Source: Macrostomum lignano
Taxonomy: Eukaryota
Reading direction: 5' to 3'
DNA length: 64,000 nucleotides
NCBI GenBank assembly: GCA_002269645.1
Contig: NIVC01001855.1
Location: forward strand, 124,001 to 188,000
Below are positions 1,135-59,204 of the stretch, piece by piece. A program made the translations under genes and the position numbers. Under the pieces are notes generated by a model. It was not told the origin of the DNA. It did not search any database and saw only the letters and a program-made list of their open reading frames with translations. Numbering within the stretch: the first letter of the stretch is position 1; each line of letters starts with the position of its first letter.

Positions 1135-2074
1135 TCAAAGCTTAGACTTTCGCGAGAAAAATTTCGCCACAGCATTGAAGCAGTCCTCGGATATCCAGCG
1201 CTCCTGCAGCCGGTTGCACTCCCGTTCGTTGGTGGCGTGCAGCTCCGCTCTGATTGGCTCTCGCAAAAGCTGCTTGGCGTAAATTAGCGTCTGCAAAGAG
1301 ATAGAAGAGGGAGAGAGGCAGATGGGAGACGAAAGGAGAGGGAGATAAGAGAGAAAGGGAGAGAGGGAGATAAGAGAGAAAGGGACAGAGGGAGATAAGA
1401 GAGAAAGGGAGAGACGGAGATAAGAGAGAAAGGGAGAGAGGGAGATAAGAGAGAAGGGAGAGACGGAGATAAGAGAGAAAGGGAGAGAGGGAGATAAGAG
1501 AGAAGGGAGAGAGGGAGATAGGAGAGGAAGGGAGAGAGGGAGATAGGGGAGAGAGGGAGAGAGGGAGATAGGAGAGGAAGGGAGAGAAAAGTTACAACAG
1601 TAGGCTTCTAAAAATCTGAAAACTATTTTAAGCTAGCTAGCTCTCCGCAGCAGAAAATTGAATTAATGAGATCAGTGCATCCAGTGAACAAATCGGTTAA
1701 GCAAAAATTAGCAGATGACCGGCGCTCACCTGTCTGGGCAGGGCGGCAATCTCTTCAACTGCGGCGCCGGCCTCGGCGGCGAAGGAGGCAGCCGGGAAGA
1801 CCCGGCTAACGAGGCCGCAGGACAGCGCCTCCTGGGCGGAGATCTTCCGGTTGAACATGACCAGGGAGGCAGCAGCCGGCAGGCCCATGATGCGGGGCAG
1901 GGTGTAGGAGGAGCAGCCTTCGGGAGTTTGGCCCAGCGAGGAGAATGGCATGTGGAATGTGGCTGAGTCGGAGGCGAACACCTGCGATTAGGGAGTAGGA
2001 ATTTAATTGACTTTATTGTTAAAGCTTAACTATCTACCTACCTGTCTGCATCTATCTATCTGTCTATCTATCTG

Positions 2075-2142
<68 letters not shown>

Positions 2143-4451
2143 CACTTATTTCCAACAAATGCGCCCAGTTCTCAAAAGACTCACCTGATCGTACAGGCCC
2201 AGCGTGGACACAGAGATGCCCACCGCGGGCCCATTAACCAGCGCAATCAACGGCTTGGGGAAGTCGATAAATGCCGCAACAAAGCGACGCAAAATGGCGT
2301 TACCATCGGCGGCCATCTGCTCCATGGTGACGCCGGGTTTTAAATTGGTGAAGCTGGACAAATCGTTGCCGGAGCTGAAATACTCCCCGGCACCGGTGAT
2401 GACCATAGCCTTGACCTTGTCGTCAGCGGCGGCCTGCTCCATCGCTTTGGACCATTCAGCGTATAGATCGGTTGAGATGGCATTCTTCTTGGCTGGCCGA
2501 TTCAGGGTGAACCAAAGCACCCCGCTAGGCGAGATGGATACTAGAGCTTCCTGAAAGTAAATAAAAATACATAATAAAGTTTCTGCGCAATCGTCTACTT
2601 ACAGTAGCAACATGAAAATTTAACAATCTTTATATATTGTAAATATTGGAATCCTCTCAATTGACCTTAGATGTTGTTAATGTTAGATCTTGGTTTTAAT
2701 TAACGCCAAAAAAATAAAGACAAAACAAACTTTTAGTGCTAAAAATGCAACGTTTCATTTATTGTCTTTTAAACCAATGCGAATGAGAATTGCTGCAGTA
2801 ACTGAGATTCGGATATTTGAACCTTGAGTGCATGCAAACATAATTATGTCGTATGTAAAAACAGACCTCGCTCGGACCCTTTTTATAGTTCTTAAATTTA
2901 TTTTTACAACTAGTAGCTAGAAGTAGTTAAAGTAGTTAAAACTTAATCCAACTATATCCAGGAGCGCCAACTAAAGGGGCACCAGCTACACAGGGGGCAC
3001 CAGCTACAGAGGGGCCGCCAGCTACAGAGGGGGCGCCAGCTACAGAGGGGCCGCCAGCTACAGAGGGGGCGCCAGCTACAGAGGGGCCGCCAGCTACAGA
3101 GGGGGCGCCAGCTACAGAGGGGGCGCCAGCTACAGAGGGGCCGCCAGCTACAGAGGGGGCGCCAGCTACAGAGGGGCCGCCAGCTACAGAGGGGGCGCCA
3201 GCTACAGAGGGGGCGCCAGCTACAGAGGGGCCGCCAGCTACAGAGGGGCCGCCAGCTACAGAGGGGGCGCCAGCTACAGAGGGGGCGCCAGCTACAGAGG
3301 GGGCGCCAGCTACAGAGGGGGCGCCAGCTACAGAGGGGGCGCCAGCTACAGAGGGGGCGCCAGCTACAGAGGGGGCGCCAGCTACAGAGGGGCGCCAGCT
3401 ACAGAGGGGGCACCAGCTACAGAAGGGGCGCCAGCTACAGAGAAGGCGCCAGCTACAGAGGGGGCGCCATCTACAGAAGGGGCACCAGCTACAGAGGGGC
3501 CGCCAGCTACAGAGGGGGCGCCAGCTACAGAAGGGGCACCAGCTACAGAGGGGGCGCCAGCTACAGAGGGGGGCGCCAGCTACAGAGGGGGCACCAGCTA
3601 CAGAGGGGGCGCCAGCTACAGAAGGGGCGCCAGCTACAGAGGGGGCACCAGCTACAGAGGGGGCGCCAGCTACAGAAGGGGCGCCAGCTACAGAAGGGGC
3701 GCCAGCTACAGAGGGGGCACCAGCTACAGAGGGGGCGCCAGCTACAGAGGGGGCGCCAGCTACAGAGGGGCGCCAGCTACAGAGGGGGCGCCAGCTACAG
3801 AGGGGGCGCCAACTACAGAGGGGGCGCCAACTACAGAGGGGGCGCCAGCTACAGAGGGGGCGCCAGCTACAGAGGGGGCGCCAGCTACAGAGCAAGCTGC
3901 CTATCAGTGAGCGCATGACAGCTAATCTTGCAGAGAAATGTCATTAGAAAATCTTCAGACAAAAAATCTTCAGCAAAACAAAAAATGCAGTTATTTTAAT
4001 AAAGATTTCACAATCAATAAGCTTGTACCTTATAATCAGCAGACGCAGTATTAGAATCGGCGGGATTAGTAGTATCGGCAGTAGTATCGGGAGCATCCAG
4101 CTTGCCGCCCATGGACTCCACCAGGTCAATGTACTGCTGCATAGCCTGATCCTTGGTCATGTCCCCAAGGCCGCTCCAAGCGTCCCATTTGGCTCGGCCG
4201 ACGAAATCGGTGAATCCCGGCTTCGGCTTGGTGCACTTGCCCTCCGTGGCCTGCTTATACAGGCTGTAGATCTTCAGCTTGGCAGCATTGCCGGGATCCT
4301 CAGTGAGCCGCTGCAGAGCTGACTGCGCCTTGGTGAATTTGTCAGCCAGTCCGCCTGCGGATGACAGGCTGCGTAGTCCACTGGCAGTCTGCACTACTGA
4401 TGCTGATAGAAACATTCTATTGCAAGCTGAGCTAAGTCGGTGCAGAGCCAT
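1135..4451 (-). CDS. ECI2: Enoyl-CoA delta isomerase 2 (ACBP domain + crotonase domain), about 398 aa, C-terminal SKL
   Basis: Exons 4029-4451, 2185-2550, 1730-1981 and 1135-1290, all phase 0 with GT-AG. ACBP motifs [12 protein letters not shown] and GRAKWDAW. Crotonase motifs [30 protein letters not shown] and [17 protein letters not shown]. The last exon reads [51 protein letters not shown]. Confidence 0.95.
1310..1590. repeat. GA-rich ~25-bp minisatellite in ECI2 intron 3
   Basis: Tandem GGGAGAGAGGGAGATAAGAGAGAAA-like units. Confidence 0.9.
2030..2143. repeat. (TCTA)n microsatellite in ECI2 intron 2
   Basis: Direct reading. Confidence 0.95.
2965..3893. repeat. 18-bp minisatellite (CCAGCTACAGAGGGGGCG)n in ECI2 intron 1
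   Basis: About 50 units. Explains the spurious AGAPSV/CSWRPL ORF. Confidence 0.95.
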
Positions 4452-4684
4452 TAATTTGCTTATTGGTTGGTTATATGCAATTTTCTGCAAACATGTATGG
4501 ATGATTATTCTGCAGAAATTTTCACTGCATATGCTTACAGATAGCAACTGCTCTTGTGGCCACAACACAACTATAAAAATATAGTAGGTGAGAATTTTTC
4601 CCATTACATTTTACAATTGTGAATTTTTAATTATACTATAAATGATTAGAATAGGAAGATTAATGACATTAACAAATTTTAATA

Positions 4685-10330: not shown

Positions 10331-10861
10331 TCGTTTGGTCCTTTTGGCTCCTGCAGCAGGAAAGCGCGGCTCACGTCCCGGACATCCGTCTTGACCGCTG
10401 GAAAGCAGCTCTGTGCATGCCCTGTGTAAACACTGTTCTAGAATTTTCTAAGGACGAGCCGACTCTTTAATCTTCAAATTAAGCTGATGCAGGCATCCGA
10501 TCGCTCCCTCACTCTGCTTCTGCAGCTGAAGATACGTAGGCGTTTTTGATTGCTTATAATTACCGTTTACGCGCGATTGTAGAAGAGCACCCGCGAAGGC
10601 GGCGCCAATTACAATAGCAAGCTTCCATTTTGGCGCCAATTCCATGCTGGTACCTCCATGGAAATTGGCGTAGGTTTGTTTGAGCTTCCAACTCGATCCA
10701 GCTTCAGCGCCGATGATTGGCAACGCCGACGCAGCACTCGGCAGGCGCGTGATTCCCGGCTGCGTTTTTAAGCGGAGCGGCAGATCCGGGAGAGCGGAGC
10801 CAACACTCGCAAAGATAACTTGGCAAAACTGCAACCTCTCAATTCGAAAGATATAGCTAGC

Positions 10862-11249
10862 ATGAATCTGCTGCTGCTTGCTACCGTCTGTCTGTTGGGC
10901 TTTGCTGCTTCTAGTGCCTCACCTATCAGCAGGAACCATCCGCTGATTGATCCGGCCGCTAGCGACCACCTGGCCAACAAGAGACGCCTGCCCAGCAATG
11001 TCGTGTGTAAGTTGAACCGTTTTTCGAGTCGGACTAAAGATGCAAATGTTTCAAAATTCTTTCTAACTCTTTCTATAACCAATGCCCAGTAAACTATTTG
11101 TGTTTTTTTCAGACCCCAGAAACACCTGGAAAATCATCTGTACAATCCACTGCATCCATCAAGGCGGTCGCTACCGCAGGTACTGCGTCAGCGAACAAAA
11201 TTATTACAGCAATTATGTGGCCGAACGTTGTCCCTGCTACAGCTGTTAA
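10862..11249 (+). CDS. Secreted cysteine-rich defensin-like (CS-alpha/beta) prepropeptide, 93 aa, two exons
   Basis: Exons 10862-11006 and 11113-11249 with a 106-bp phase-1 intron (GTAAGT...TTTTTTTCAG). Protein MNLLLLATVCLLGFAASSASPISRNHPLIDPAASDHLANKRRLPSNVVYPRNTWKIICTIHCIHQGGRYRRYCVSEQNYYSNYVAERCPCYSC*. It has a signal peptide, a KRR site, and CxxxC and CxC motifs. AATAAA at 11427-11432. Confidence 0.8.
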
Positions 11250-11556
11250 TTAACTGGAACTGGTCGGAGCGACCGAATCTTGCGAACCAGCTAACTACCT
11301 ACTGATCTCAGCATTGCTTAAGAGCTGGAAAGCGAACAACATGAAAAGAGACAATTTTGATCAGTGATTTTGGTGGCAAGTTGCGGCATCGAGAGCGCAA
11401 GAATCAACCCCATATTGAGAGTTTAAAATAAACGAAGTGAATCCATCTGCTGATAAAACAAAATGAGCATAAAAAAGATGGCTTTTGATGGCTTTATCTA
11501 TTAAAAAGTTTAATTTATAAAAAATGCAGGGCTGAGCTAGCTGAGCTTAATAACCT

Positions 11557-12093
11557 GAGCTCAGTAAGCTACATGTAATTGGCTCAGTAAGCTACATGTA
11601 ATTGGCTCAGTAAGCTACATGTAATTAGCTCAGTAAGCTACATGTAGTTAGCTCAGTAAGCTACATATAATTGGCTCAGTAAGCTACATGTAGTTAGCTC
11701 AGTAAGCTACATTTAATTAGCTCAGTAAGCTACATGTAATTAGCTCAGTAAGCTACATTTAATTGGCTCAGTAAGCTACATTTAATTGGCTCAGTAAGCT
11801 ACATGTAGTGGCTCAGTAAGCTACATGTAATTAGCTCAGTAAGCTACATGTAATTAGCTCAGTAAGCTACATGTAATTAGCTCAGTAAGCTACATGTAAT
11901 TAGCTCAGTAAGCTACATGTAATTAGCTCAGTAAGCTACATGTAATTAGCTCAGTAAGCTACATGTAATTAGCTCAGTAAGCTACATGTAGTTAGCTCAG
12001 TAAGCTACATTTAATTGGCTCAGTAAGCTACATGTAGTTAGCTCAGTAAGCTACATTTAATTGGCTCAGTAAGCTACATGTAGTGGCTCAGTA
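11557..12093. repeat. 23-bp minisatellite (GCTCAGTAAGCTACATGTAATTA)n
   Basis: About 23 units with a palindromic TACATGTA core. Confidence 0.95.
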
Positions 12094-12620
12094 AGGAACT
12101 AGGGTTAGCTTCATACTTAAGGTCAGACTAAATAAGGTAATTCACTTCATCACTTCCGTCTGAATGATGTACATGTCTCAATTAAAGGTCAGCCGATACA
12201 GGCATCCAGTTAGGCGTCATTCTTCTGAGGTAAATGCAAGCCTGCACAGGGTTGAAAAGCTGCAGTGAAATACAAAATTGCAAATGCTTAGTGCTAAGCT
12301 ATATGGATACTACACACGTGTTTTTATATGCACTAATTTATTTTTAGGCAGCCATACCATCAAAGCCCAGCCCCTCCAGCCTGTGTATAGAACGTCAAAA
12401 AATTAAATTGTCAAAAAACCCTGTCTTATTGCAAAAATTGAGCCCAGGGATGCACGAATCGACTTGAATTATTAATAAGCTGCAGTAAAATCCATGCCTT
12501 TATTAGGCACACCGCTCCGGCTCATTACACTGTCTGCAGCCACTTGTTTTAGAATTCCGTCCCATTGCTGCTGCTGCTGTTTAGGCAGTCTCCAAACTGT
12601 GAGTCCTAAGCCGTTTGAGT

Positions 12621-19257: not shown

Positions 19258-20780
19258 GAGGTGTCAGCCGGGGTGTCAGTTGGTGTCAGTTGGATGCCAG
19301 TTGGGTGTCAGTTGAGCGTCAGTTGGGTGTTAGTTGAGTGTCAGTTGGGTGTTAGTTAAGTGTCAGTTGGGTATCAGTTGGGCAGGGGCGTAGCCAGAGG
19401 GGGGGCAAGGGGGGCCGCGGCCCCCCCCCAATCACCAACTCTGGCCTTGGCGCCCCCCCCCCCAGAACTGCGCTTTGCCGCCCCTTTGAAAATGCTGCCG
19501 CTTTCCTGGCGCCCCCCCCATAAATAAACTGCCCTCCCCCTAAAAAAACTGCCCCCCCCTGAAACTGGCGCCCCCCTATAAGAAACTGGCGCGCCCCCCC
19601 CCTATAAGAAACTGGCGCCCCCCCCCCCTATAAGAAACTGGCGCCCCCCCCCCCTATAAGAAACTGGCGCCCCCCTCTATAAGAAACTGGCGCCCCCTAA
19701 CTCACCGCGCCCCCCCCAATCAATATTCCTGGCTACGCCCCTGCAGTTGGGTGTCAGTTGGGTACCAGTTGGGTGTCAGTTGGGTGTCAGTTGGGTGTCA
19801 GTTGGGTATCAGTTGGGTGTCAGTTGGGTGTCAGTTGGGTGTCAGTTGGGTATCAGTTGGGTGTCTGCAGTTGGGTGTCAGTTGGGTGTCAGCTGGGTGT
19901 CAGTTAGGTGTCAGTTGGGTGTCAGTTGGGTATCAGTTGGGTGTTAGTTGGGTGTCAGTTGGGTATCAGTTGGGTGTCTGCAGTTGGGTTTCAGTTGGGT
20001 GTCACCTGGGTGTCAGTTAGGTGTCAGTTGGGTGTCAGTTGGGTATCAGTTAGGTGTCAGTTGGGTATCAGTTGGGTGTCTGCAGTTGGGTGTCAGTTGG
20101 GTGTCAGCTGGGTGTCAGTTAGGTGTCAGTTGGGTGTCAGTTGGGTATCAGTTGGGTGTCAGTTGGGTGTCAGTTAGGTGTCAGTTGGGTGTCAGTTGGG
20201 TATCAGTTAGGTGTCAGTTGGGTATCAGTTGGGTGTCTGCAGTTGGGTGTCAGTTGGGTGTCAGCTGGGTGTCAGTTAGGTGTCAGTTGGGTGTCAGTTG
20301 GGTATCAGTTGGGTGTCAGTTGGGTGTCAGTTGGGTATCAGTTGGGTGTCTGCAGTTGGGTTTCAGTTGGGTGTCACCTGGGTGTCAGTTAGGTGTCAGT
20401 TGGGTGTCAGTTGGGTATCAGTTAGGTGTCAGTTGGGTATCAGTTGGGTGTCAGTTGGGTGTCATTTGGGTATCAGTTGGGTGTCAGTTGGGTATCATTT
20501 GGGTGTCAGTTGGGTGTCAGTTGGGTATCAGTTGGGTGTCAGTTGGGTGTCAGTTGGGTATCAGTTGGGTGTCTGCAGTTGGGTTTCAGTTGGGTGTCAC
20601 CTGGGTGTCAGTTAGGTGTCAGTTGGGTGTCAGTTGGGTATCAGTTAGGTGTCAGTTGGGTATCAGTTGGGTGTCAGTTGGGTGTCAGTTGGGTATCAGT
20701 TGGGTGTCAGTTGGGTGTCAGTTGGGTATCAGTTGGGTGTCTGCAGTTGGGTTTCAGTTGGGTGTCAGCTGGGTGTCAGT
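19258..20780. repeat. 11-bp minisatellite (GGGTGTCAGTT)n with a 372-bp higher-order duplication, interrupted by a MITE
   Basis: Direct reading. Near-identical repeat-derived ORFs at 19751/20123 and 19908/20280 are 372 bp apart. Confidence 0.95.
19383..19743. mobile_element. hAT-type MITE (361 bp) inserted in the 11-bp array
   Basis: 15-bp TIRs CAGGGGCGTAGCCAG / CTGGCTACGCCCCTG. 8-bp TSD CAGTTGGG (19375-19382, 19744-19751). Internal tandem AAACTGGCGCCCCCC(n)TATAAG. Confidence 0.9.
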
Positions 20781-21384
20781 TTCTCGAATTTAAGGAACTA
20801 TTTATTCCGACTCTGCTTTCTGACTGCATGTACAATTGTCCGATCAGATTAAGGAATTACAATTAGAAGGCCAGCGCGGCGCGGCAGCCCGAGGATCGCG
20901 ACTCGGACCTCGCGGCAAACTCAGGAAGTTGAGCTGCCGCCACAGGACATGAGGGCGTGGCCCGTCAGAGGCATCCTGATCTGTCGTGAGGCGTCTTGTG
21001 AGCTGCCTACTGCCTACTGGGACTTCGGCTTTTAGGTGCTTTTAGATGACGTCCTCTTTGATCCACAGAATCTCAAAAATTGGTGTACATGTAAAACTTG
21101 CTGTCATCTTAAATAAAACCAAATTTAAAGCAACCTGGCGATAAAACTACCTGTGTGCCCTTCAAATAATTTTGCAATATCTACGAGTGTTGCGTCCTGA
21201 TACAACGGTTACTTTTAGTGGTCCTTGATATATGATTGGTCACCGTTTAACGGACGGAATTGTTTATAAATGTATTTCAAATGGAACACGCTTAAGTAAA
21301 TCAAAGCTAGCATGCATTTATGTAAATTCATAATTGTTAAAATGTTCACTTTTTGAAGTTCTAAAAATCCAAGCCAAGCAGATG

Positions 21385-23183
<1,799 letters not shown>

Positions 23184-26425: not shown

Positions 26426-28602
26426 ATGGACAACATCTGCGCCAATCATTGCTGCCGCTGTCACAGGCGCAGCTGCGACCTCGGCTGCGACATGATTCAC
26501 TGCAACTGCGGTGCCTGTTTCCACGCCTGCAAACGGCCGGATCACCTGTTGATTTGTCCCAGGCAGCTGGTCCCCTGCATCAATGTTGCTTACGGTTGCG
26601 ACAGGCGATTGCCTCGTCAGCAGTTGGCCAGTCACCTGCCTGTCTGTCCGGCCTCCATTGTCCAGTGCCCGCTGATGCTGTTTCCGGAGTTCGTGACGTC
26701 ATCCATGAGCGTCGCCTGTCCGGATGGGGACGGATTTTGTCGATCGAATTTCGACAGCGCCCTCTGCCTGTCGCTGATGCTTAAAGAGCGTCGGCCGGCG
26801 TCTAGTAATAATAATTACAGTAACAGTAAGTCTGCCAAGTCTGTTGCTAATAACAACAATTATGGAGAAGGTCATCGGGCTGGCAGTGAGCCGCTAGACC
26901 AGTTGCTAGGCTACCGTAGTCAAGGACTCGGCGATCGTGATGATGATAAAGAAGAGGCTGGGGAGAAATCGGCCGAGCAGCCTCATCGACTGCCAAGCAG
27001 CGGCCTGTCCGCTCGGATTCTGAGCTGCCTTGCCGAGTCGCCAAATCTTCATCAACACCAGCCTCCGCTGCCGCAGCTTGTCAATCATCACTTGGCGTTT
27101 GTTAATCCTGGCGACGGCTGTCCGAGGGCTCACGATTGGCGTCCGCGCGGTGCTCGGGTGTGCTCTCAGGTGAGCTGCGGGTTCTGTTCTGTCTGCTTAA
27201 GTATCTTACAGGGGTCTGTACTCAAGTATCTTACAGGTGTCTACTCTAGTATCTTACAGGTGTCTGTACTCAAGTATCTTACAGGTGTCTGTACTCTAGT
27301 ATCTTACAGGTGTCTGTACTCAAGTATCTTACAGGTGTCTGTACTCAAGTATCTTACAGGTGTCTGTACTCAAGTATCTTACAGGTGTCTGTACTCAAGT
27401 ATCTTACAGGTGTCTGTACTCAAGTATCTTACAGGTGTCTGTACTCAAGTATCTTACAGGTGTCTGTACTCCAGTATCTTACAGGTGTCTGTACTCAAGT
27501 ATCTTACAGGTGTCTGTACTCAAGTATCTTAAAGGTGTCTGTACTCAAGAATCTGCAAGATTCTGTACTTTGTTACTAAGTCAATCCTTTTATTATCTTT
27601 AGTTGATGTGTGTTTTATAAAGTTTATAAAAAGATCTTTTTAAGGTAACCATTAGTAATGCGGTTATTCTAATCTCCTCCGCTCTCTGCCGCACAGGTTG
27701 TTCGTCGCGACGAGTTCTCTTGGCACGCAGCGCAGCACCTCCGCCTGTATCCCAACTTGTCCGGCAGCGACACCCTCGCGGCTGAGACAGTCTGTCCGCT
27801 GGCCTACCTGGGCTGCACCGCCCGCTTCACAGGCGATAAAGGCCTCGTGTTCGATCTGTTCGGGCACGCTTTCGCTCGCCGAGATACCTCTGTTGGTTGT
27901 CTTGGCGATGAGAAGGCTAGCGGTGTTGGAGACGATTCTAGCGATGATGATGGCTACTGTAGTGAGTGGGGTACGGGTTGGAGACGGTTTCGGGGCGATT
28001 GATTGGGATATGTATCCAGACAGACATACACAGACCGACAGACAGACAGGCAGGCAGGCAGGCAGACAGACAGACAGACAGACAGACACCAAGACAGACA
28101 GACAGACATACACAGACAGACAGACAGACAGACACTAAGACAGGCAGACAGACAGACAGGCAGGCAGACAGACCGACAGACAGACAGACCGACAGACAGA
28201 CAGACAGACAGGCAGGCAGGCAGGCAGACAGGCAGACAGGCAGGCAGACAGACAAACAGACGACAGACAGACAGGCAGGCAGGCAGGCAGGCAGGCAGAC
28301 AGACAGACGACAGACAGACAGACAGACAGACAGACAGGCAGACAGACAGACAGACAGACAGACAGGCAGACAGACAGACAGACGACAGGCAGGCAGACAG
28401 ACAGGCAGGCAGACAGACAGACAGGCAGGCAGACAGACAGACAGGCAGGCAGGCAGACAGACAGACAGACAGACAGACGACAGGCAGACAGACACTAAGA
28501 CACTAACACTAAGACAGGCAGACAGGCAGACAGACAGACAGGCAGACAGACAGACAGACAGACAGACGACAGGCAGACAGACACTAAGACACTAAGACAG
28601 GC

Positions 28603-32830: not shown

Positions 32831-35800
32831 ATGGCATCGGCCAGCACGTTCCGACCCTACAGATTGAGCTGCAGCCTTCTAGGCCACGAGAAAGACGTGA
32901 AAGCCCTGTGCTCGGTGACCTCCCCTGCCCTGTCTGGGGCTGCCTGTATCGCCAGCGCCAGTCGCGATCGAACAGCTCGAGTTTGGAGTCCGGATCTGGC
33001 TGCTGAAGATGGAGCGGTTGGTTACACGGAGTGCCTGGGCCTGTGCTCGCATGCCGGCTACGTGAATGCCGTTGCTTGGATGGACCCGTGCGACTGGTGC
33101 CCTGGTGGCCTGCTGTACACCGCTGGAATGGACAAGGTGGGTAGCTGGGAGATGGGAGAGTACTACTCATTATTCCCTGTGTTTTCGTCGCATTCTTAAT
33201 TCCTTATTATTATTTTTTCCCATGAATCCCCATCCTCCCCATCATATTTCCCCATAAATCCCCATTCTCCCCATCATATTCCCCATGAATCCCCATTCTC
33301 CCCATCATATTTCCCCATAAATCCCCATTCTCCCACCATATTTCCCCATGAATCCCCATTCTCCCCACCATATTCCCCATGAATCCCCATTCTCCCCATC
33401 ATATTTCCCCATAAATCCCCATTCTCCCCATCATATTCCCCATGAATCCCCATTCTCCCCATCATATTTCCCCATAAATCCCCATTCTCCCCACCATATT
33501 TCCCCATAAATCCCCATTCTCCCCACCATATTTCCCCATAAATCCCCATTCTCCCCACCATATTTCCCCATAAATCCCCATTCTCCCCACCATATTCCCC
33601 ATGAATCCCCATTCTCCCCATCATATTTCCCCATAAATCCCCATTCTCCCCACCATATTCCCCATGAATCCCCATTCTCCCCACCATATTCCCCATGAAT
33701 CCCCATTCTCCCCATCATATTTCCCCATAAATCCCCATTCTCCCCACCATATTCCCCATGAATCCCCATTCTCCCCATCATATTTCCCCATAAATCCCCA
33801 TTCTCCCCACCATATTCCCCATGAATTCCCCCTTCTCCCCACCATATTCCCCATGAATCCCCATTCTCCCCATCATATTTCCCCATGAATCCCCCTTCTC
33901 CCCACCATATTCCCCATGAATCCCCATTCTCCCCATCATATTTCCCATAAATCCCCATTCTCCCCATCATATTTCCCCATAAATCCCCATTCTCCCCACC
34001 ATATTCCCCATGAATTCCCCCTTCTCCCCACCATATTCCCGATGAATTCCCCATTATCCCCATCATATTTCCCCATAAATCCCCATTCTCCCCACCATAT
34101 TCCTCATGAATTCCCCCTTCTCCCCACCATATTCCCGATGAATTCCCCATTCTCCCCATCATATTTCCCCATAAATCCCCATTCTCCCCACCATATTCCC
34201 CATGAATTCCCCCTTCTCCCCACCATATTCCCCATAAATCCTCATTCTCCCCACCATATTTCCCAATGAATCCCCCTTCTCCCCACCATATTCCCCATGA
34301 ATCCCCATTCTCCCCATCATATTTCCCCATAAATCCCCATTCTCCCCACCATATTCCCCATGAATCCCGCTACTTCCCACCATGTTCCCCATGAATCCCT
34401 ATTCTCCCCTTCATATTTCCCCATAAAGTCCTCTTATTCTCAATATATATATATATAACTTTCTATCCCTTTCTTGATAACTTTTTGGATAAAATCCCAT
34501 TGTATCCTATCGCCAAATGCCCCCCTCTCAACCAGGTAATATTCGCCTTCACCCTGGACTCGCCCGAGCCAGTCGCCCGTCTCGAAGGTCACGAAGCGAA
34601 CGTCTGCGGCCTGAGCTGCGCCGGCCCGCACGGATCCAGCGGCCGCCAGCTGCTCAGCGCCAGCTGGGACCGAACCGCTCGACTGTGGCGTCGCAACCGC
34701 TGCGTGGCCGTGTTCGCTGGCGGCCACGAGGCGGCGGTCTGGTCCGCTATCAGCTTCGACCCGGAGGAGGCGCTGGTCGCCACGGCCGGGGCGGACAGAC
34801 AGATCAAGCTGTGGCCGATGGAGCTCGGCACGGATAAGGATGGCGAGACTGAACTGGTAACTGGGACTTCGAATTTCGGATTGTGGGATTGGGATTTCAA
34901 TTTGGGGAGTCGGGATTTCAAGTGGGAGGGTTGAGGATTCAAATTGTGGAATCGGGATTTCAGACTGGGGAATTAGGATTTCAGATTGGGGAATTGGGAT
35001 TTCAGGTTGGAGAATTTGGGATTCTAGCTTAGAGAATTGGGATTTCAGATTTAGAAATTGGGATTTCAGGTTGGAAAATAGATTTAAAATGGTTGAATTG
35101 GGATTTCAGATTAGGGAATTGGGATTTCAGATTGGAGAATTGCGATTTTAGATTAGAGAATAGGGATTTTAGATTGGGGAACTGGGATTTCAGATTATGG
35201 AATTGGGATTTCAGATTGGAGAATTGCGATTTCAGGTTAAGGAATTCGGATTTCAGATTGGAGAACTGCGATTTTAGATTAGAGAATTGGGATTTTAGAT
35301 TGGGGAATTGGGATTTTAGATTAGGGAATTGGGATTTCAGATTAGGGAACTGAGATTTCAGATTATGGAATTAGGATTTCAGATTAGGGAACTGGGATTT
35401 CAGATTAGGGAATTGAAATTTCAGATTGGGGAATTGGGATTTTAGATTATAGAATTGGGATTTCAGATTAGGGAATTGGGATTTCAGATTGGGGAATTGG
35501 GATTTCAGATTAGGGAATTGGGATTTCAGATTAGGGAACTGGGATTTTATAGCTGTTAGTAATAATATCCTAAGCACGAATACGTATTTTATTAACTCAA
35601 CAGCCGCAGCAGCTGGCCAAGCCCTCCAGCGTGACGACTCTCTCTGGTCACTTCGACGCCGTTCGCGGCCTCTGCCGCCTCCCCAATCGCCGATTTGTGT
35701 CCTGCAGCAACGACGCCACGCTCCGACTGTGGCACCTGCACGCCACCTCCAGTCAGATGACATTTGAAGGTCACGCCGGTTTCGTCTACGCCGTCGCCGC

Positions 35801-38800: not shown

Positions 38801-40315
38801 ATTGAAATGCAATAGGTTTTTTATGTATGAAAAGTATAAAAACAGAAAAATCATATTTTTATTGTCTTGAATTAAAAAAACATTACTACTTTGAACTTGG
38901 GGTTTTTTACTTTAAGTAGTCTGACACGCAAATCTGCTGATTATCTAAGGTCGCAACATCGGTATATATAAAGCTACATAAGAGCCGCGTTCACACACCT
39001 TTCAGATACCTGCCCTACAAGGAGTTGCAGATTCTGTCAGCTGGCAACATGGCCGGGCTGCGTAAGAAACTTGGCGAACTGGCCGCCTCGGTGCCAGCAG
39101 ACCTGCCCGATCGGCTGGGCGCACTGGTGGAATCCGGGATCAGTCAGGGAGACTCAGCCGATGCCCGACTGATTCTGTCCATTGCTGACACGGCTTTGAA
39201 TGGAGTTTCAGATTGCTCTCTGCCTCTGCTTGATGTGCTGCGAATGGCTTGCAGATTTCCTGTGGCTGCTCAGATCCTGTTGGAATCCGGCAGTGCAACT
39301 GTAGCTCAGTTGTTGGCTAAATTTCTGTCTCCTAGTAGCAGTCTGCCGTGTCAGATGCTCGCGGCCAGGCTGCTGGCCAATTTAGCTGCAACTGAGGCTG
39401 GTAAAGTTTGGCTAGTTGGCAATTTTAAATCGGTGCTCGAATTAATTGATCAGCTGGACTTTGCCAAGGAGAATGCCGGCTGGCAGGTGAGCGAGTCGAC
39501 TCTGAACTGCTGGCTTATTTGTTGTTTTTGTCATGCACTGTTTGACTCATTTAGTCATGCACTGTTTGAGTCATTCAGTCATGCACTGCTTGACTCATTT
39601 AGTCATGCACTGTTTGAGTCATTCAGTCATGCACTGCTTGACTCATTCAGTCATGCACTGTTTGAGTCATTCAGTCATGCACTGCTTGACTCATTTAGTC
39701 ATGCACTGTTTGAGTCATTCAGTCATGCACTGCTTGACTCATTCAGTCATGCACTGTTTGAGTCATTCACTCATGCACTGCTTGACTCATTCAGTCATGC
39801 ACTGTTTGAGTCATTAAGTCATGCACTGTTTGAGTCATTCACTCATGCACTGTTTGAGTCATTCAGTCATTCACTTAGTCTGTCAGTCATTCACTGAGTC
39901 ATTCAATCATTCACTGAGTCATTCAGTCATTCACTGAGTCAGTCAGTCATTCACTGAGTCATTCAGTCATTCTTTAAGCAGCCAACCACTCTCGGCCCAA
40001 ACCTCCCAGACGGCCGTCTCATCAGCCCTGTGCAACCTGTCCCAGTTGGTGCAGCAGCAGGCCGAGTGCCCGGAGTCCTCAGCTGACCGGCTGCTCGAAT
40101 TGCTGCACCGCATGCTGGCCAAAGCTGGCTCGGCACTGAAAGACGAGCCCGCATTTCTCGTGGTTGTGTCGGTTGGAAACCTGCTGCTCACGAGACCGGG
40201 ATCAGCTGTTCGGGCTAAGGACCTGGGCTTGAAGCCGCTGCTGCACCGGTTCACGGATACCAGCTATTCTGTGAGGCTGACCGAAGCCGCCACGGTCGTG
40301 AGCTGCCAGTTCTGA
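32831..40315 (+). CDS. PLAA: Phospholipase A-2-activating protein / Doa1-Ufd3 (WD40 + PFU + PUL), about 838 aa
   Basis: Exons 32831-33136, 34536-34856, 35604-35984, 36628-36860, 37906-38394, 39006-39486 and 40010-40315 (2517 nt, phases consistent). YRLSCSLLGHEKDVK, WD40 repeats (SASWDRTARLW, SCSNDATLRLW, SASEDRTCRLW), PFU (FEGQDYDFVFTVDVEEGKPPLKLPYNRTEDPWFAAQRFI), DPFTGGNRYVPG and PUL (LPLLDVLR, VVSVGNLL). Confidence 0.96.
33210..34425. repeat. C-rich ~31-33-bp array (CATATTCCCCATGAATCCCCATTCTCCCCAC-like), PLAA intron 1
   Basis: Direct reading. Confidence 0.95.
34865..35548. repeat. 21-bp array (GGGATTTCAGATTAGGGAATT)n, PLAA intron 2
   Basis: Direct reading. Confidence 0.92.
36090..36560. 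repeat. Degenerate GTAAACAG/CAGG array, PLAA intron 3
   Basis: Direct reading. Confidence 0.8.
36975..37835. repeat. 22-23-bp GAGAATCGCCCC-core array with higher-order units, PLAA intron 4
   Basis: Direct reading. Confidence 0.92.
38415..38790. repeat. ~31-bp array (GGATTCTCTAATTGGTGTGGGATATGGGATA)n, PLAA intron 5
   Basis: Direct reading. Confidence 0.9.
39530..39972. repeat. 24-bp array (AGTCATGCACTGTTTGAGTCATTC)n grading into AGTCATTC, PLAA intron 6
   Basis: Direct reading. Confidence 0.92.
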
Positions 40316-43084: not shown

Positions 43085-46000
43085 AGTGAATAGAATAGGA
43101 GATATACTTGGATAGAATGGGTGACATACTGAAGGATAGAATAGGTGATATACTGAAGGATAGAATAGGCGATATACTGAAGGATACAATGGGTGATATA
43201 GTGATGGATAGAATAGGTGATATACTGAAGGATACAATGGGTGATATAGTGATGGATAGAATGGGTGATATACTGAAGGATAGAATGGGTGATATACTGA
43301 TGGATAGAATAGGTGATATACTGAAGGATAGAATGGGTGATATAGTCATGGATAGAATGGGTGATATACTGAAGGATAGAATAGGTGATATACTGATGGA
43401 TAGGATAAGTGATATACTGATGGATAGAATGGGTGATATACTGATGGATAGAATGGGTGATAAACTGATGGATAGAATGGGTGATATACTGATGGATAGA
43501 ATGGGTGATATACTGATGGATAGAATGGGTGATAAACTGATGGATTTGATAAGTGATATACTGATGGATAGAATGGGTGATATACTGAAGGATAGAATAG
43601 GTGATATACTGATGGATAGGATAAGTGATATACTGAATGATAGAATAGGTGATATACTGAAGGATAGAATGGTTGATATACTGAAGGATAGAATGGGTGA
43701 TATACTGAAGGATAGAATGGGTGATATACTGAAGGATAGAATGAGTGATATACTGAATGATAGAATAGGTGATATACTGATGGATAGAATGGTTGATATA
43801 CTGAAGGATAGAATGGGTGATATACTGAAGGATAGAATGGGTGATATACTGAAGGATAGAATAGGTGATATACTGAAGGATAGAATGGGTGGTATACTGA
43901 TGGATAGAATGGGTGATATACTGATGGATAGAATGGGTGATAAACTGATGGATAGAATGGGTGATATACTGATGGATAGAATGGGTGATATACTGAAGGA
44001 TAGAATAGGTGATATACTGAAGGAAAGAATGGGTGATATACTGAAGGATAGAATGGGTGATATACTGAAGGATAGAATAGGTGATATACTGAAGGAAAGA
44101 ATGGGTGATATACTGATGGATAGAATTGGTGATATACTGAAGGATAGAATTGGTGATATACTGAAGGATAGAATTGGTGATATACTGATAGATAGAATGG
44201 GTGACATACTGAAGGATAGAATAGGTGATATACTGAAGGATAGAATAGGCGATATACTGAAGGATACAATGGGTGATATAGTGATGGATAGAATAGGTGA
44301 TATACTGAAGGATACAATGGGTGATATAGTGATGGATAGAATGGGTGATATACTGAAGGATAGAATGGGTGATATACTGATGGATAGAATAGGTGATATA
44401 CTGAAGGATAGAATGGGTGATATAGTCATGGATAGAATGGGTGATATACTGAAGGATAGAATAGGTGATATACTGATGGATAGGATAAGTGATATACTGA
44501 TGGATAGAATGGGTGATATACTGATGGATAGAATGGGTGATAAACTGATGGATAGAATGGGTGATAAACTGATGGATTTGATAAGTGATATACTGATGGA
44601 TATGATAAGTGATATACTGATGGATAGAATGGGTGATATACTGAAGGATAGAATAGGTGATATACTGATGGATAGGATAAGTGATATACTGAATGATAGA
44701 ATAGGTGATATACTGAAGGATAGAATGGTTGATATACTGAAGGATAGAATGGGTGATATACTGAAGGATAGAATGGGTGATATACTGAAGGATAGAATGA
44801 GTGATATACTGAATGATAGAATAGGTGATATACTGATGGATAGAATGGTTGATATACTGAAGGATAGAATGGGTGATATACTGAAGGATAGAATGGGTGA
44901 TATACTGAAGGATAGAATAGGTGATATACTGAAGGATAGAATGGGTGGTATACTGATGGATAGAATGGGTGATATACTGATGGATAGAATGGGTGATAAA
45001 CTGATGGATAGAATGGGTGATATACTGATGGATAGAATGGGTGATATACTGAAGGATAGAATAGGTGATATACTGAAGGAAAGAATGGGTGATATACTGA
45101 AGGATAGAATGGGTGATATACTGAAGGATAGAATAGGTGATATACTGAAGGAAAGAATGGGTGATATACTGATGGATAGAATTGGTGATATACTGAAGGA
45201 TAGAATTGGTGATATACTGAAGGATAGAATTGGTGATATACTGATAGATAGAATTGGTGATATACTGAAGGATAGAATTGGTGATATACTGAAGGATAGA
45301 ATTTGTGATATACTGAAGGATAGAATTTGTGATATACTGATTGATAGAATGGTTGATATACTGAAGGATAGAATGGGTGATATACTGATGGATAGAATGG
45401 GTGATATACTGAAGGATAGAATTGGTGATATACTGATGGATAGAATGGTTGATATACTGAAGGATAGAATGGGTGATATACTGAAGGATAGAATGGGTGA
45501 TATACTGAAGAATAGAATGAGTGATATACTGAATGATAGAATAGGTGATATACTGAAGGATAGAATGGTTGATATACTGAAGGATAGAATGGGTGATATA
45601 CTGAAGGATAGAATGGGTGATATACTGAAGGATAGAATGAGTGATATACTGAATGATAGAATAGGTGATATACTGATGGATAGAATGGTTGATATACTGA
45701 AGGATAGAATGGGTGATATACTGAAGGATAGAATGGGTGATATACTGAAGGATAGAATAGGTGATATACTGAAGGATAGAATGGGTGGTATACTGATGGA
45801 TAGAATGGGTGATATACTGATGGATAGAATGGGTGATAAACTGATGGATAGAATGGGTGATATACTGATGGATAGAATGGGTGATATACTGAAGGATAGA
45901 ATAGGTGATATACTGAAGGAAAGAATGGGTGATATACTGAAGGATAGAATGGGTGATATACTGAAGGATAGAATTTGTGATATACTGATTGATAGAATGG

Positions 46001-47095
46001 TTGATATACTGAAGGATAGAATGGGTGATATACTGATGGATAGAATGGGTGATATACTGAAGGATAGAATGGTTGATATACTGAAGGATAGAATGGGTGA
46101 TATACTGAAGGATAGAATGGGTGATATACTGAAGGATAGAATGGGTGATATACTGAAGGATAGAATGAGTGATATACTGAATGATAGAATGGGTGATAAA
46201 CTGATGGATAGAATGGGTGATATACTGATGGATAGAATGGGTGATATACCGAAGGATAGAATGGGTGATATAGTGATGGATAGAATGGGTGATATACTGA
46301 AGGATAGAATAGGTGATGTACTGAAGGATAGAATAGGTGATATACTGAAGGATAGAATAGGTGATGTACTGAAGGATAGAATAGGTGGTATACTGAAGGA
46401 TAGAATAGGTGATATACTGAAGGATAGAATGGGTGGTATACTGATGGATAGAATGGGTGATATACTGATGGATAGAATGGGTGATAAACTGATGGATAGA
46501 ATGGGTGATATACTGATGGATAGAATGGGTGATATACTGAAGGATAGAATAGGTGATATACTGAAGGAAAGAATGGGTGATATACTGAAGGATAGAATGG
46601 GTGATATACTGAAGGATAGAATTTGTGATATACTGATTGATAGAATGGTTGATATACTGAAGGATAGAATGGGTGATATACTGATGGATAGAATGGGTGA
46701 TATACTGAAGGATAGAATGGTTGATATACTGAAGGATAGAATGGGTGATATACTGAAGGATAGAATGGGTGATATACTGAAGGATAGAATGGGTGATATA
46801 CTGAAGGATAGAATGAGTGATATACTGAATGATAGAATGGGTGATAAACTGATGGATAGAATGGGTGATATACTGATGGATAGAATGGGTGATATACCGA
46901 AGGATAGAATGGGTGATATAGTGATGGATAGAATGGGTGATATACTGAAGGATAGAATAGGTGATGTACTGAAGGATAGAATAGGTGATATACTGAAGGA
47001 TAGAATAGGTGATGTACTGAAGGATAGAATAGGTGGTATACTGAAGGATAGAATAGGTGATATACTGAAGGATAGAATGGGTGGTATACTGATGG
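43085..47095. repeat. 4-kb 24-bp satellite (GATAGAATGGGTGATATACTGAAG)n with 1080-bp and 648-bp higher-order duplications
   Basis: About 166 units. Diagnostic variant GTGACATACT at 43121 and 44201 (45 units apart). GAATTTGTGATATACTGATT at 45971 and 46619 (27 units apart). Confidence 0.97.
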
Positions 47096-47554
47096 AAAAA
47101 ATGAATAACTTTCAAATGAACAAAGTGGGTCAGTGTGATGATAATGAGGCCCATTTTTCAAGAAGTACATCGATGTCCTTTTGCATGCAGTCTGGCTCGT
47201 ACTGTACAGCAGAGTTTCGCAACCAGATTCCCTCACGCGAAAGTTGAACAGAGAAATTTTGTAGTAAAAAGCATTTTTTATATAGGAAGGAGCCTAGGCT
47301 TGCCTGTGTAAGATCTCTTTGATGTCTAATCCCGATCCTTCATCATGGATGTTGAGCTGTTCTGACAGTCAACGCATGGCTGGCGCCTGACTCTTGTCTT
47401 TTGAGGCTTATACTGTGAGTAACTGAAACTAGTTGATGTGCGACAATGGATCATGAACTAGAAATTATTATTTATTACAAATTTGGCACTCCTGCTGACA
47501 TGCAAACTTTTGGCGCCTCCTGACACTAGATTGCATCGCTTTTTGGCACCCAAA

Positions 47555-57140: not shown

Positions 57141-58330
<1,190 letters not shown>

Positions 58331-59204
58331 CCTTAAGCGACAAAGTCAAGGGGACTCAATTGAGTCTGGAACGCAAAATCAATATTATTGAGAACGGAGC
58401 TACGCATTACAGAAGTATCGAACTGCATGTTTTAGACTTTATTTTCAAGCAGCACCAATCTCATCTCCCTCCCCGCTATCCCTCCCCGCTATCCCCGATA
58501 GCCCATCTATTAGACCGAGTCCCACGCCACAGCAGTATAGTAATCTAATCTAATCTGCATGGGTTTCAAGGGTTGGCTCAGCTCCAGATAAAATCTGATA
58601 ACGCAAATCGAGTTCACGGCGTGCGAAATGTCTGCGTCTTGACCCGATGGAGAGGCTGGACTGGGTGGATGAAGCAATGGCTGACATGAGCTCCTGTCTC
58701 TGAGCAGCATTGGAGCCATTGCATCACAACACCATCGCTAAATATAGGAGGACCTCCCCGAAGTCTCTTGTATTCTCAGGTCCCTCCCCGCAGCGCTAAT
58801 AGCTGTGATAAGAGTTAATTGTCACGGTTTCCAGGTGCTAATTGCTATGCCTGCTCATGACTTGTCAGCTATCTGTTCTGTCTGGGGCAGTTAATTACCG
58901 TTCTCAACTTCGGGTGATTATTTTAGGCGAATATGTCTCTCTCTATAATCAGTGATCTAACAATTAAATGAGTGTCTTTTAAATATGATTCACTCATTTA
59001 ATGAAGCCATGTGTCCAAGTGGAGTCACTTTACCGACATTACGAATATTTGAACACCTACCATAATATATTTATAAGCAATGATTTTGGTTGCGCTTAGC
59101 ACGATTCAGGGGCTGTCAGAGTGGCGCCCATTTCAAGGTGTCAGAGTGGCGCCTAGTTCAAGTTATCACACTGGCGATTATTTCGTTGTCAGGGTGGCGC
59201 TTTT

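Follow-up and report, generated by a model that had tools for sequence, protein, structure and literature searches.

A stretch of 64,000 nucleotides from the genome of the flatworm Macrostomum lignano (hereafter the window, within which all positions are counted) contains, at positions 10862–11249, a genuine, transcribed and spliced gene. The reading that we prefer, with a probability of roughly 0.6, is that this annotated two-exon gene belongs to a small M. lignano family and encodes a secreted prepropeptide with six cysteines. An initial annotation, made from the letters of the sequence, had seen there a hidden two-exon gene for a defensin-like peptide with a possibly rewired disulfide pattern, perhaps of an undescribed antimicrobial or toxin family. 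The gene model proposed in this way has held. What can be said of the family as a whole is more sober: it is made of uncharacterised, already annotated, orphan cysteine-rich secreted peptides.

Joining 10862–11006 to 11113–11249 gives a coding sequence of 282 nt, i.e. 93 codons followed by TAA, from which a precursor of 93 residues is predicted, MNLLLLATVCLLGFAASSASPISRNHPLIDPAASDHLANKRRLPSNVVYPRNTWKIICTIHCIHQGGRYRRYCVSEQNYYSNYVAERCPCYSC. Exon 1 ends in GTC GTG T/gtaagt and exon 2 begins after tttttttcag/AC, so that the intron is of the GT..AG type and in phase 1. Positions 862–21249 of the window correspond, at 100% identity, to NIVC01001855.1:124862–145249 of the M. lignano assembly Mlig_3_7 (GCA_002269645.1). 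In GenBank the gene span of BOX15_Mlig033545g2/g3 is 388 bp, exactly 10862–11249, and PAA63327.1 and PAA82951.1 (BOX15_Mlig033545g3 and g2) match the spliced product at 100% identity; the coordinates and the product that had been put forward are thus those of the public gene, which for the same reason cannot be called hidden. For Mlig_3_7 the annotation derives from RNA-seq transcripts only (StringTie/TACO and de novo assembly), with open reading frames (ORFs) from TransDecoder (Wudarski et al., 2017, PMC5730564), and a spliced transcript carrying the 11006/11113 junction therefore underlies the gene model. The remark that the ORF track misses the gene is fair for a bacterial-type list of ORFs, which breaks it into two pieces, 10820–11092 and 11082–11249. 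The elements of the gene, all on the plus strand, are as follows.

10719–10861, plus strand: conserved upstream block, 5' untranslated region and/or proximal promoter (from blastn of the window against the paralogous locus L003)
10862–11006, plus strand: coding part of exon 1, with the signal peptide, the pro-region and the first six residues plus one nucleotide of the putative mature peptide (product as in PAA63327.1/PAA82951.1)
10922–10987, plus strand: predicted pro-region, residues 21–42, with the invariant K40-R41 at 10979–10984
10862–10921, plus strand: predicted signal peptide, residues 1–20 (SignalP 4.1 positive; Irvine et al., 2023)
11007–11112, plus strand: intron of 106 nt, phase 1, gtaagt...tttttttcag, at the same position and in the same phase in L003, L004 and L005
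11113–11249, plus strand: coding part of exon 2, with the remainder of the six-cysteine domain and the stop codon; the six cysteines are invariant in the paralog
11139–11141 and 11244–11246, plus strand, within exon 2: codons of C58 and of C93, the latter ending at 11246, followed by TAA at 11247–11249
11169–11180, plus strand: internal furin-type R-Y-R-R, residues 68–71, between C62 and C73 (ProP 1.0 site in Irvine et al., 2023)
11427–11432, plus strand: polyadenylation signal AATAAA, 178 nt 3' of the stop

The flanks of the gene have their counterparts in the paralogous subfamily, Mlig029134. When the window is aligned by blastn with locus L003, positions 10719–11022 match at 72% identity, the similarity starting about 143 bp 5' of the ATG, and the transcript-derived ORFs of this paralog (P0002, P0005) run upstream of the equivalent methionine. 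On the other side, the paralog has ATTAAA 169 nt 3' of its stop.

The family consists of two paralogous subfamilies, Mlig033545 and Mlig029134, with two to three near-identical copies each, as expected in the neopolyploid genome of M. lignano. A tblastn search of the 64-kb window revealed no second copy of the peptide gene, but the paralogs that the initial annotation had proposed to look for do exist in the genome, at loci L001, L003, L004 and L005. Between the window locus and L001 there is no difference in the whole 388 bp. The g1 allele, at L004 (NIVC01001338.1), differs from g2/g3 by five non-synonymous and two synonymous changes (pN/pS, the ratio of non-synonymous to synonymous differences per site, 0.71), among which K55E, N78K and A85D alter the charge of the mature peptide, lowering its net value from +4 to +2. 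The Mlig029134 copies (L003 and L005) differ by one non-synonymous and four synonymous changes; for both of these comparisons, g3 with g1 and copy with copy, the counts are too small for an inference of selection. Between the subfamilies the distance is much larger, with 52% identity, and what is kept is telling: an uninterrupted reading frame, all six cysteines with their spacing, the phase-1 intron at the same codon in L003, L004 and L005 (introns of 84–104 nt), and a set of family-wide invariant residues made of C58, C62, C73, C88, C90, C93, K40, R41, W54, G66, Y69 and the stretch E86-R87-C-P-C, the C-terminal ERCPC.SC being retained in Mlig029134. The ratio of non-synonymous to synonymous substitution rates (dN/dS) between subfamilies is 0.36, and by this measure the gene appears to be under purifying selection. 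The two parts of the precursor evolve differently, with identity of about 70% in the prepro part versus about 43% in the mature part and dN of 0.18 versus 0.49; the dN/dS of the mature part, 0.31 with a saturated dS, is below 1 and provides no evidence of diversifying selection.

Relatives were looked for widely. A word-indexed search of 5.8e9 proteins returned two M. lignano clusters only, and hmmsearch with the family profile among 1.84e9 cluster representatives returned the two M. lignano clusters and two false matches only (P0006 and P0007), which were rejected as relatives, as they are translated tandem repeats. Neither the precursor nor the mature domain matched a defensin, toxin, macin or ShK family in Pfam at E<=10, the one match there being noise (Peptidase_C3G, E 0.17). 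In the Protein Data Bank (PDB), phmmer had no match, and the sole match of the family profile at E<=10 was to a USP54 chain (E 7.2), which is unrelated. The family thus appears to be lineage-restricted, in the sense of the databases searched, from which sequences of other Macrostomum species are probably missing.

The precursor has the features of a secreted, processed peptide. The sequence itself shows a hydrophobic signal-peptide core, LLLLATVCLLGFAA, and the signal peptide that had been predicted agrees with a SignalP 4.1 answer of "Y" for the identical Mlig033545g3 sequence (Irvine et al., 2023, PMC10414684). Downstream of the KRR the spliced product bears out the initial annotation, with 51 residues, a net charge of +4 (K+R-D-E), seven tyrosines, and six cysteines spaced C-x3-C-x10-C-x14-C-x-C-x2-C. 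One may then picture its biogenesis as follows. On entry into the endoplasmic reticulum the signal peptide, about residues 1–20, would be removed; the six invariant cysteines would form three disulfides; a subtilisin-like proprotein convertase would most likely cut at Lys40-Arg41(-Arg42), a site suggested by its conservation and which ProP did not predict; and a tyrosine-rich, disulfide-locked peptide of about 51 residues would be released to act outside the cell. From cleavage at K40-R41(-R42) we infer a mature mass of about 6.1 kDa.

The peptide cannot be called undescribed, as the identical sequence is found in GenBank and UniProt and also in a published in-silico screen for antimicrobial peptides (AMPs), where BOX15_Mlig033545g3 is flatworm AMP-like peptide no. 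530 (Irvine et al., 2023, PMC10414684, Supplementary File 5). In that work ProP 1.0 gave a single site, after R68-Y-R-R71, from which a 22-residue peptide, YCVSEQNYYSNYVAERCPCYSC, was derived; six of 11 AMP predictors (54.5%, the minimum pass) were positive for it, and the pipeline set no. 530 aside as "Ungrouped", for want of a sequelog in any other genome (Irvine et al., 2023, PMC10414684).

Several observations weigh against the picture of a processed, extracellular effector, and it is convenient to consider them together. The AMP-predictor score is the lowest passing value and was obtained with a 22-residue fragment. Cationicity is not conserved, the net charge across the family being +4, +2 and +1, which weakens the case for a classical membrane-active antimicrobial mechanism. 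There are two divergent subfamilies only, so that statistics of selection and conservation are thin. The neighbouring genes (ECI2-like, DPCD, TRAF-like zinc finger, PUL domain) are of the housekeeping type and say nothing about the function. Neither Mlig033545 nor Mlig029134 is mentioned in those supplements that were searched of five M. lignano expression studies, Brand (2020), Grudniewska (2018), Mouton (2018), PMC12732829 and PMC12896417, and a full-text literature search for "Mlig033545" returned no occurrence. Finally, the published ProP 1.0 prediction is RYRR71 and not KR41, which makes the mature N-terminus uncertain.

This last point deserves further consideration, as it implies a different product: cleavage at the internal R68-Y-R-R71 would liberate a free C-terminal peptide of 22 residues, YCVSEQNYYSNYVAERCPCYSC, or leave two chains linked by disulfides. 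R-X-R-R is the furin consensus, ProP predicted exactly this one site, and the published peptide begins at Y72. The motif is present in the Mlig033545 alleles g1, g2 and g3, but at this place Mlig029134 reads RYYYSR, whereas each of the five family sequences has K40-R41; as the paralogous subfamily is without R-Y-R-R, the conserved processing site probably lies elsewhere. Cutting there would moreover part two of the six invariant cysteines from the other four, and sites buried in disulfide-rich domains may often be inaccessible. For its absence from the paralog and its place inside the cysteine framework, we rank RYRR71 below KR41, and we consider cleavage at this internal site distinctly improbable. 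As for the pro-piece ending in KR/KRR that the initial annotation had described, the dibasic pair itself is fully conserved, while its use as the processing site has the ProP prediction against it.

We now return to the preferred reading, that of a secreted six-cysteine prepropeptide, and ask which fold its mature part might adopt. The fold of defensins known as cysteine-stabilised alpha/beta (CS-alpha/beta) is defined by a cysteine-stabilised helix, with bonds from C3xxxC4 to C8xC9, and by C2–C6 as third disulfide, which "completes the CS-alpha/beta fold"; the eight-cysteine peptides of molluscs and nematodes add C5–C10 (Tarr, 2016, PMC5116183). Set on this reference array, the six cysteines of the Macrostomum peptide are C3, C4, C6, C8, C9 and C10. 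The pattern of the cysteine-stabilised helix, C58-x3-C62...C88-x-C90, is present and invariant in five of five family sequences, and its spacing could form a helix clamp C58–C88, C62–C90, leaving C73–C93. It is a weakly specific pattern, the order CxxxC...CxC being given by about 4.5% of random six-cysteine layouts. No member of the family has a cysteine between the signal peptide and CxxxC; the canonical C2–C6 bond is therefore impossible, and C73 (equivalent to C6) could pair only with C93.

A first comparison is with the mussel defensin MGD-1. The C-x3-C-x10-C spacing is that of C10-C14-C25 in MGD-1, and the C-terminal RC.CY.C resembles its RCTCYRC; the fragments that the initial annotation had quoted, CHRHC-x10-YC and RCTCYRC, agree with PDB entry 1FJN. 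The losses deduced there with respect to the eight cysteines of MGD-1, that of the first and that of the post-helix cysteine (C2 and C5 of the array), come out the same in our mapping. The likeness to MGD-1 and to the eight-cysteine mollusc and nematode peptides (bonds C2–C6, C3–C8, C4–C9, C5–C10) goes as far as a CxxxC followed by a cysteine ten residues on, a C-terminal R-C-x-C-Y-x-C, a small size, secretion (predicted here) and, in the g2/g3 allele, a cationic character. The differences are as clear: MGD-1 has eight cysteines against six in the Macrostomum peptide, which is without C2 and C5; seven residues stand between its C6 and C8, against 14; and the Macrostomum peptide has neither GxC nor significant similarity of sequence or profile to it. 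The pro-regions differ too. Precursors of the MGD type carry a C-terminal pro-extension, whereas in Macrostomum the putative pro-region is N-terminal and ends with KR, the stop following directly on the last cysteine.

In this latter respect the precursor is closer to those of insect defensins (Phormia defensin A, Drosophila defensin), with which it has in common a predicted signal peptide, a putative N-terminal propeptide with a dibasic end, a C-terminal six-cysteine peptide and the motif C-x2-H-C-x3-G, as aligned by hhalign. The invariant G66, four residues past the second helix cysteine, is placed as in the CxxHCxxxG of insect defensins. Yet the latter retain C2, C3, C4, C6, C8 and C9, not C3, C4, C6, C8, C9 and C10, the beta-loop of the Macrostomum peptide is much longer, and there is no match to Pfam Defensin_2. 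A precedent for an odd set of cysteines exists in the nematode peptide ASABF-6Cys-alpha, which has six cysteines and the cysteine-stabilised helix motif, and where the cysteines missing with respect to eight-cysteine relatives are likewise not a bonded pair, so that a non-canonical third disulfide was proposed (Tarr, 2016, PMC5116183). It differs in having lost another pair of cysteines (it retains C3 to C6, C8 and C9) and in being plainly homologous to other ASABF peptides; for the Macrostomum peptide no homologue was detected.

These likenesses would allow one to see in the peptide a highly derived CS-alpha/beta (cis-defensin) peptide, antimicrobial or channel-blocking, in which C2–C6 has been replaced by a new C73–C93 bond (C6–C10). 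We regard this as unlikely, for the following reasons. The pattern and its spacing speak for it, but the missing C2–C6 bond is joined by the absence of the GxC (gamma-core) motif before C73, which is preceded as RYC73 in Mlig033545 and as SRC in Mlig029134. Genuine defensins find each other easily across phyla: as a control, a search of the PDB with nothing but MGD-1 brings up defensins from scorpion, fungal, oyster and arthropod sources with E from 2e-9 to 4e-3, and 15 defensin-type sequences at E<=0.02. The Macrostomum family, as already seen, finds none of them there or in Pfam. Alignment of the family with 16 CS-alpha/beta peptides by hhalign has a probability of 0.2%, the sets used with this program having been assembled by hand, with three reference sequences checked against the PDB. 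In BLASTP with MGD-1 the score is 14.6 bits, over the final 16 residues. When the residues themselves are considered, counting from the one that follows KRR (mature numbering), the MGD-1-like H19, G25, R26, Y30 and Y49 become F, R, Y, R and H in the paralog, and of the six non-cysteine identities R45 alone is kept; they appear to behave as chance matches rather than as conserved residues of the family. Homology screens, for their part, covered 33 flatworm genomes, among them that of M. lignano, and reported no CS-alpha/beta peptide (Irvine et al., 2023, PMC10414684).

Geometry adds its own difficulties. In MGD-1 the C-terminal cysteine is bonded to a cysteine four residues before C6 (C21–C38). 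A C73–C93 bond would, by this comparison, need a shifted register of the hairpin, for which a loop of 14 residues, against 7 in MGD-1, might leave room. The central strand of a CS-alpha/beta sheet would not usually hold a proline such as the invariant one of C-P-C. Structure prediction with AlphaFold2 is divided at the decisive place. The model of the precursor (alignment of five sequences, mean predicted local distance difference test score, pLDDT, 50) has a helix at residues 51–64, CxxxC included, which favours a defensin-like arrangement, and is without a hairpin; the model of the mature peptide, of higher pLDDT (62), has three strands, CxxxC within one of them, and a short C-terminal helix at 40–45. 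The two low-confidence models thus contradict each other at CxxxC, helix in one and strand in the other. Compared with the PDB by Foldseek, one model reached E 0.71 at best and the other matched nothing; in neither case did a defensin come up. Neither model displays a helix tethered to a beta-hairpin, the outcome that the initial annotation had singled out as speaking against its proposal, but their confidence is too low for this to count.

Of the original proposal there remains the CxxxC...CxC pattern, with Pfam, PDB and hhalign searches, the GxC motif and the C2–C6 bond against it. Membership of the CS-alpha/beta defensins is not established, and the resemblance to mussel and insect defensins seems to be one of cysteine spacing alone; for now we would class the peptide as an orphan fold. 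That these would be the first platyhelminth host-defence peptides of CS-alpha/beta type, with a new C6–C10 disulfide in place of C2–C6, is, in our view, a long shot. If it were true, the family would bear on the way the cis-defensin scaffold evolves or re-evolves, with a helix-clamped, defensin-like peptide and a new disulfide; its presence in Platyhelminthes would mean either extreme divergence of that scaffold or its independent invention. It has been found surprising that flatworms appear to be without CS-alpha/beta peptides, big defensins and myticalins (Irvine et al., 2023, PMC10414684).

Databases propose yet another kinship. The automatic UniProt name of the g2/g3 sequence (A0A267ER24, our P0001), repeated by UniRef for the identical sequence, is "ShKT domain-containing protein", which would make of it a ShK toxin-like channel blocker or protein-interaction module with bonds C58–C93, C62–C88 and C73–C90. 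Six cysteines within about 36 residues, from the first to the last, and a terminal C-x2-C are indeed ShKT-like features. The 95%-identical g1 allele (A0A267F645, P0003) is merely "Uncharacterized" in UniRef, so the rule-based match on g2/g3 is borderline, and the name given there to the Mlig029134 paralog is "Secreted protein". Pfam ShK (PF01549) has no match at E<=10, and with five anemone ShK-type toxins hhalign arrives at a probability of 0.9%, cysteines not being aligned on cysteines. The spacing of ShK is C-x8-C-x4-C-x10-C-x3-C-x2-C. That of the Macrostomum peptide, C-x3-C-x10-C-x14-C-x-C-x2-C, has one of the five intervals in common with it, and its C-terminal spacing is C-x-C-x2-C instead of the C-x3-C-x2-C of ShKT (PF01549/PS51670). 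A true ShKT domain is thus very improbable, and the label seems no better supported than the defensin reading; we consider it unsupported.

What then might be the role of a secreted six-cysteine prepropeptide without a recognisable fold? A conserved prepro part, a divergent mature part and a rigid cysteine scaffold appear to be the usual signature of extracellular effectors, whether antimicrobial peptides, toxins or reproductive peptides. Prepropeptides of effectors of the conotoxin type offer a parallel, with prepro and mature parts conserved to a different extent (here about 70% versus 43%), a fixed cysteine framework and a dibasic site before a C-terminal, here putative, mature peptide; they differ in that there is no homology with them, that M. 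lignano is not venomous and that dN/dS of the mature part is below 1. This pattern of conservation leads us to rank first, tentatively and as a possibility short of even odds, a role in host defence or as a defensive effector; signalling or reproduction would come next, and a toxin-like role after that.

The second of these alternatives would make of the product a hormone, a pheromone or a seminal-fluid peptide, or else a prohormone with its active part at residues 21–39 and a cysteine-rich carrier tail. The succession of signal, peptide, KR and cysteine-rich C-terminus has the architecture of a prohormone, the region before KR is the best-conserved part outside the signal (ISRN.PL..P.A..H.ANKR), and the charge of the cysteine-rich part is not conserved. 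Many small secreted proteins without homologues are limited to the prostate in M. lignano (Weber, 2018, PMC5977470). There is no glycine before KR for amidation, however, no homologue in other flatworms came out of the search among 1.84e9 representatives, which is unusual for hormones, and neither gene name occurs in the supplements of the expression studies searched. We hold a signalling or reproductive function to be doubtful, if worth keeping in view. An adhesive or eggshell protein, based on dihydroxyphenylalanine (DOPA), was also considered, and nothing speaks for it beyond a tyrosine content of 14%.

At present the annotated six-cysteine prepropeptide stands among many other orphan, cysteine-rich peptides predicted to be secreted. 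As it already figures in GenBank, UniProt and a published candidate list, its worth is that of a lead rather than of a new find. The secreted immune effectors of the phylum are essentially unknown; constrained and lineage-restricted as it appears to be, in a flatworm in which transgenesis and RNA interference are routine, it makes a cheap candidate to test.

In the surroundings of the gene, an immune or toxin gene cluster was considered and rejected, the neighbours being housekeeping-type genes among minisatellites. The genes recognised in the window are the following.

1135–4475, minus strand: annotated ECI2-like gene, 406 residues, with ACBP and enoyl-CoA hydratase/isomerase domains (ACBP match in the ORF at 4014–4604, minus strand)
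22234–22830, minus strand: DPCD ORF (Pfam E 3.6e-16)
26426–27532, plus strand: TRAF-like zinc finger ORF (Pfam E 3.9e-18)
39025–39897, plus strand: PUL domain ORF (Pfam E 1.9e-13)

The last three are ordinary eukaryotic genes, unrelated to the peptide. Within the span of the ECI2-like gene lies a tandem array of an 18-bp unit in 51 copies (2976–3892), which is itself read as an ORF (2936–3916, minus strand). Closer to the peptide gene, about 130 bp 3' of its polyadenylation signal, a minisatellite at 11558–12095 repeats the 23-bp unit AGCTCAGTAAGCTACATGTAATT 23.5 times with 93% matches, and the same 23-bp minisatellite is found at the g1 locus, L004. Tandem arrays with a Tandem Repeats Finder (TRF) score of at least 100 cover about 39% of the 64-kb window, examples being 43090–47103 (24 bp in 167 copies), 57141–58331, 33215–34427 and 19744–20781, and most of the long "ORFs" of the window are translations of such repeats.

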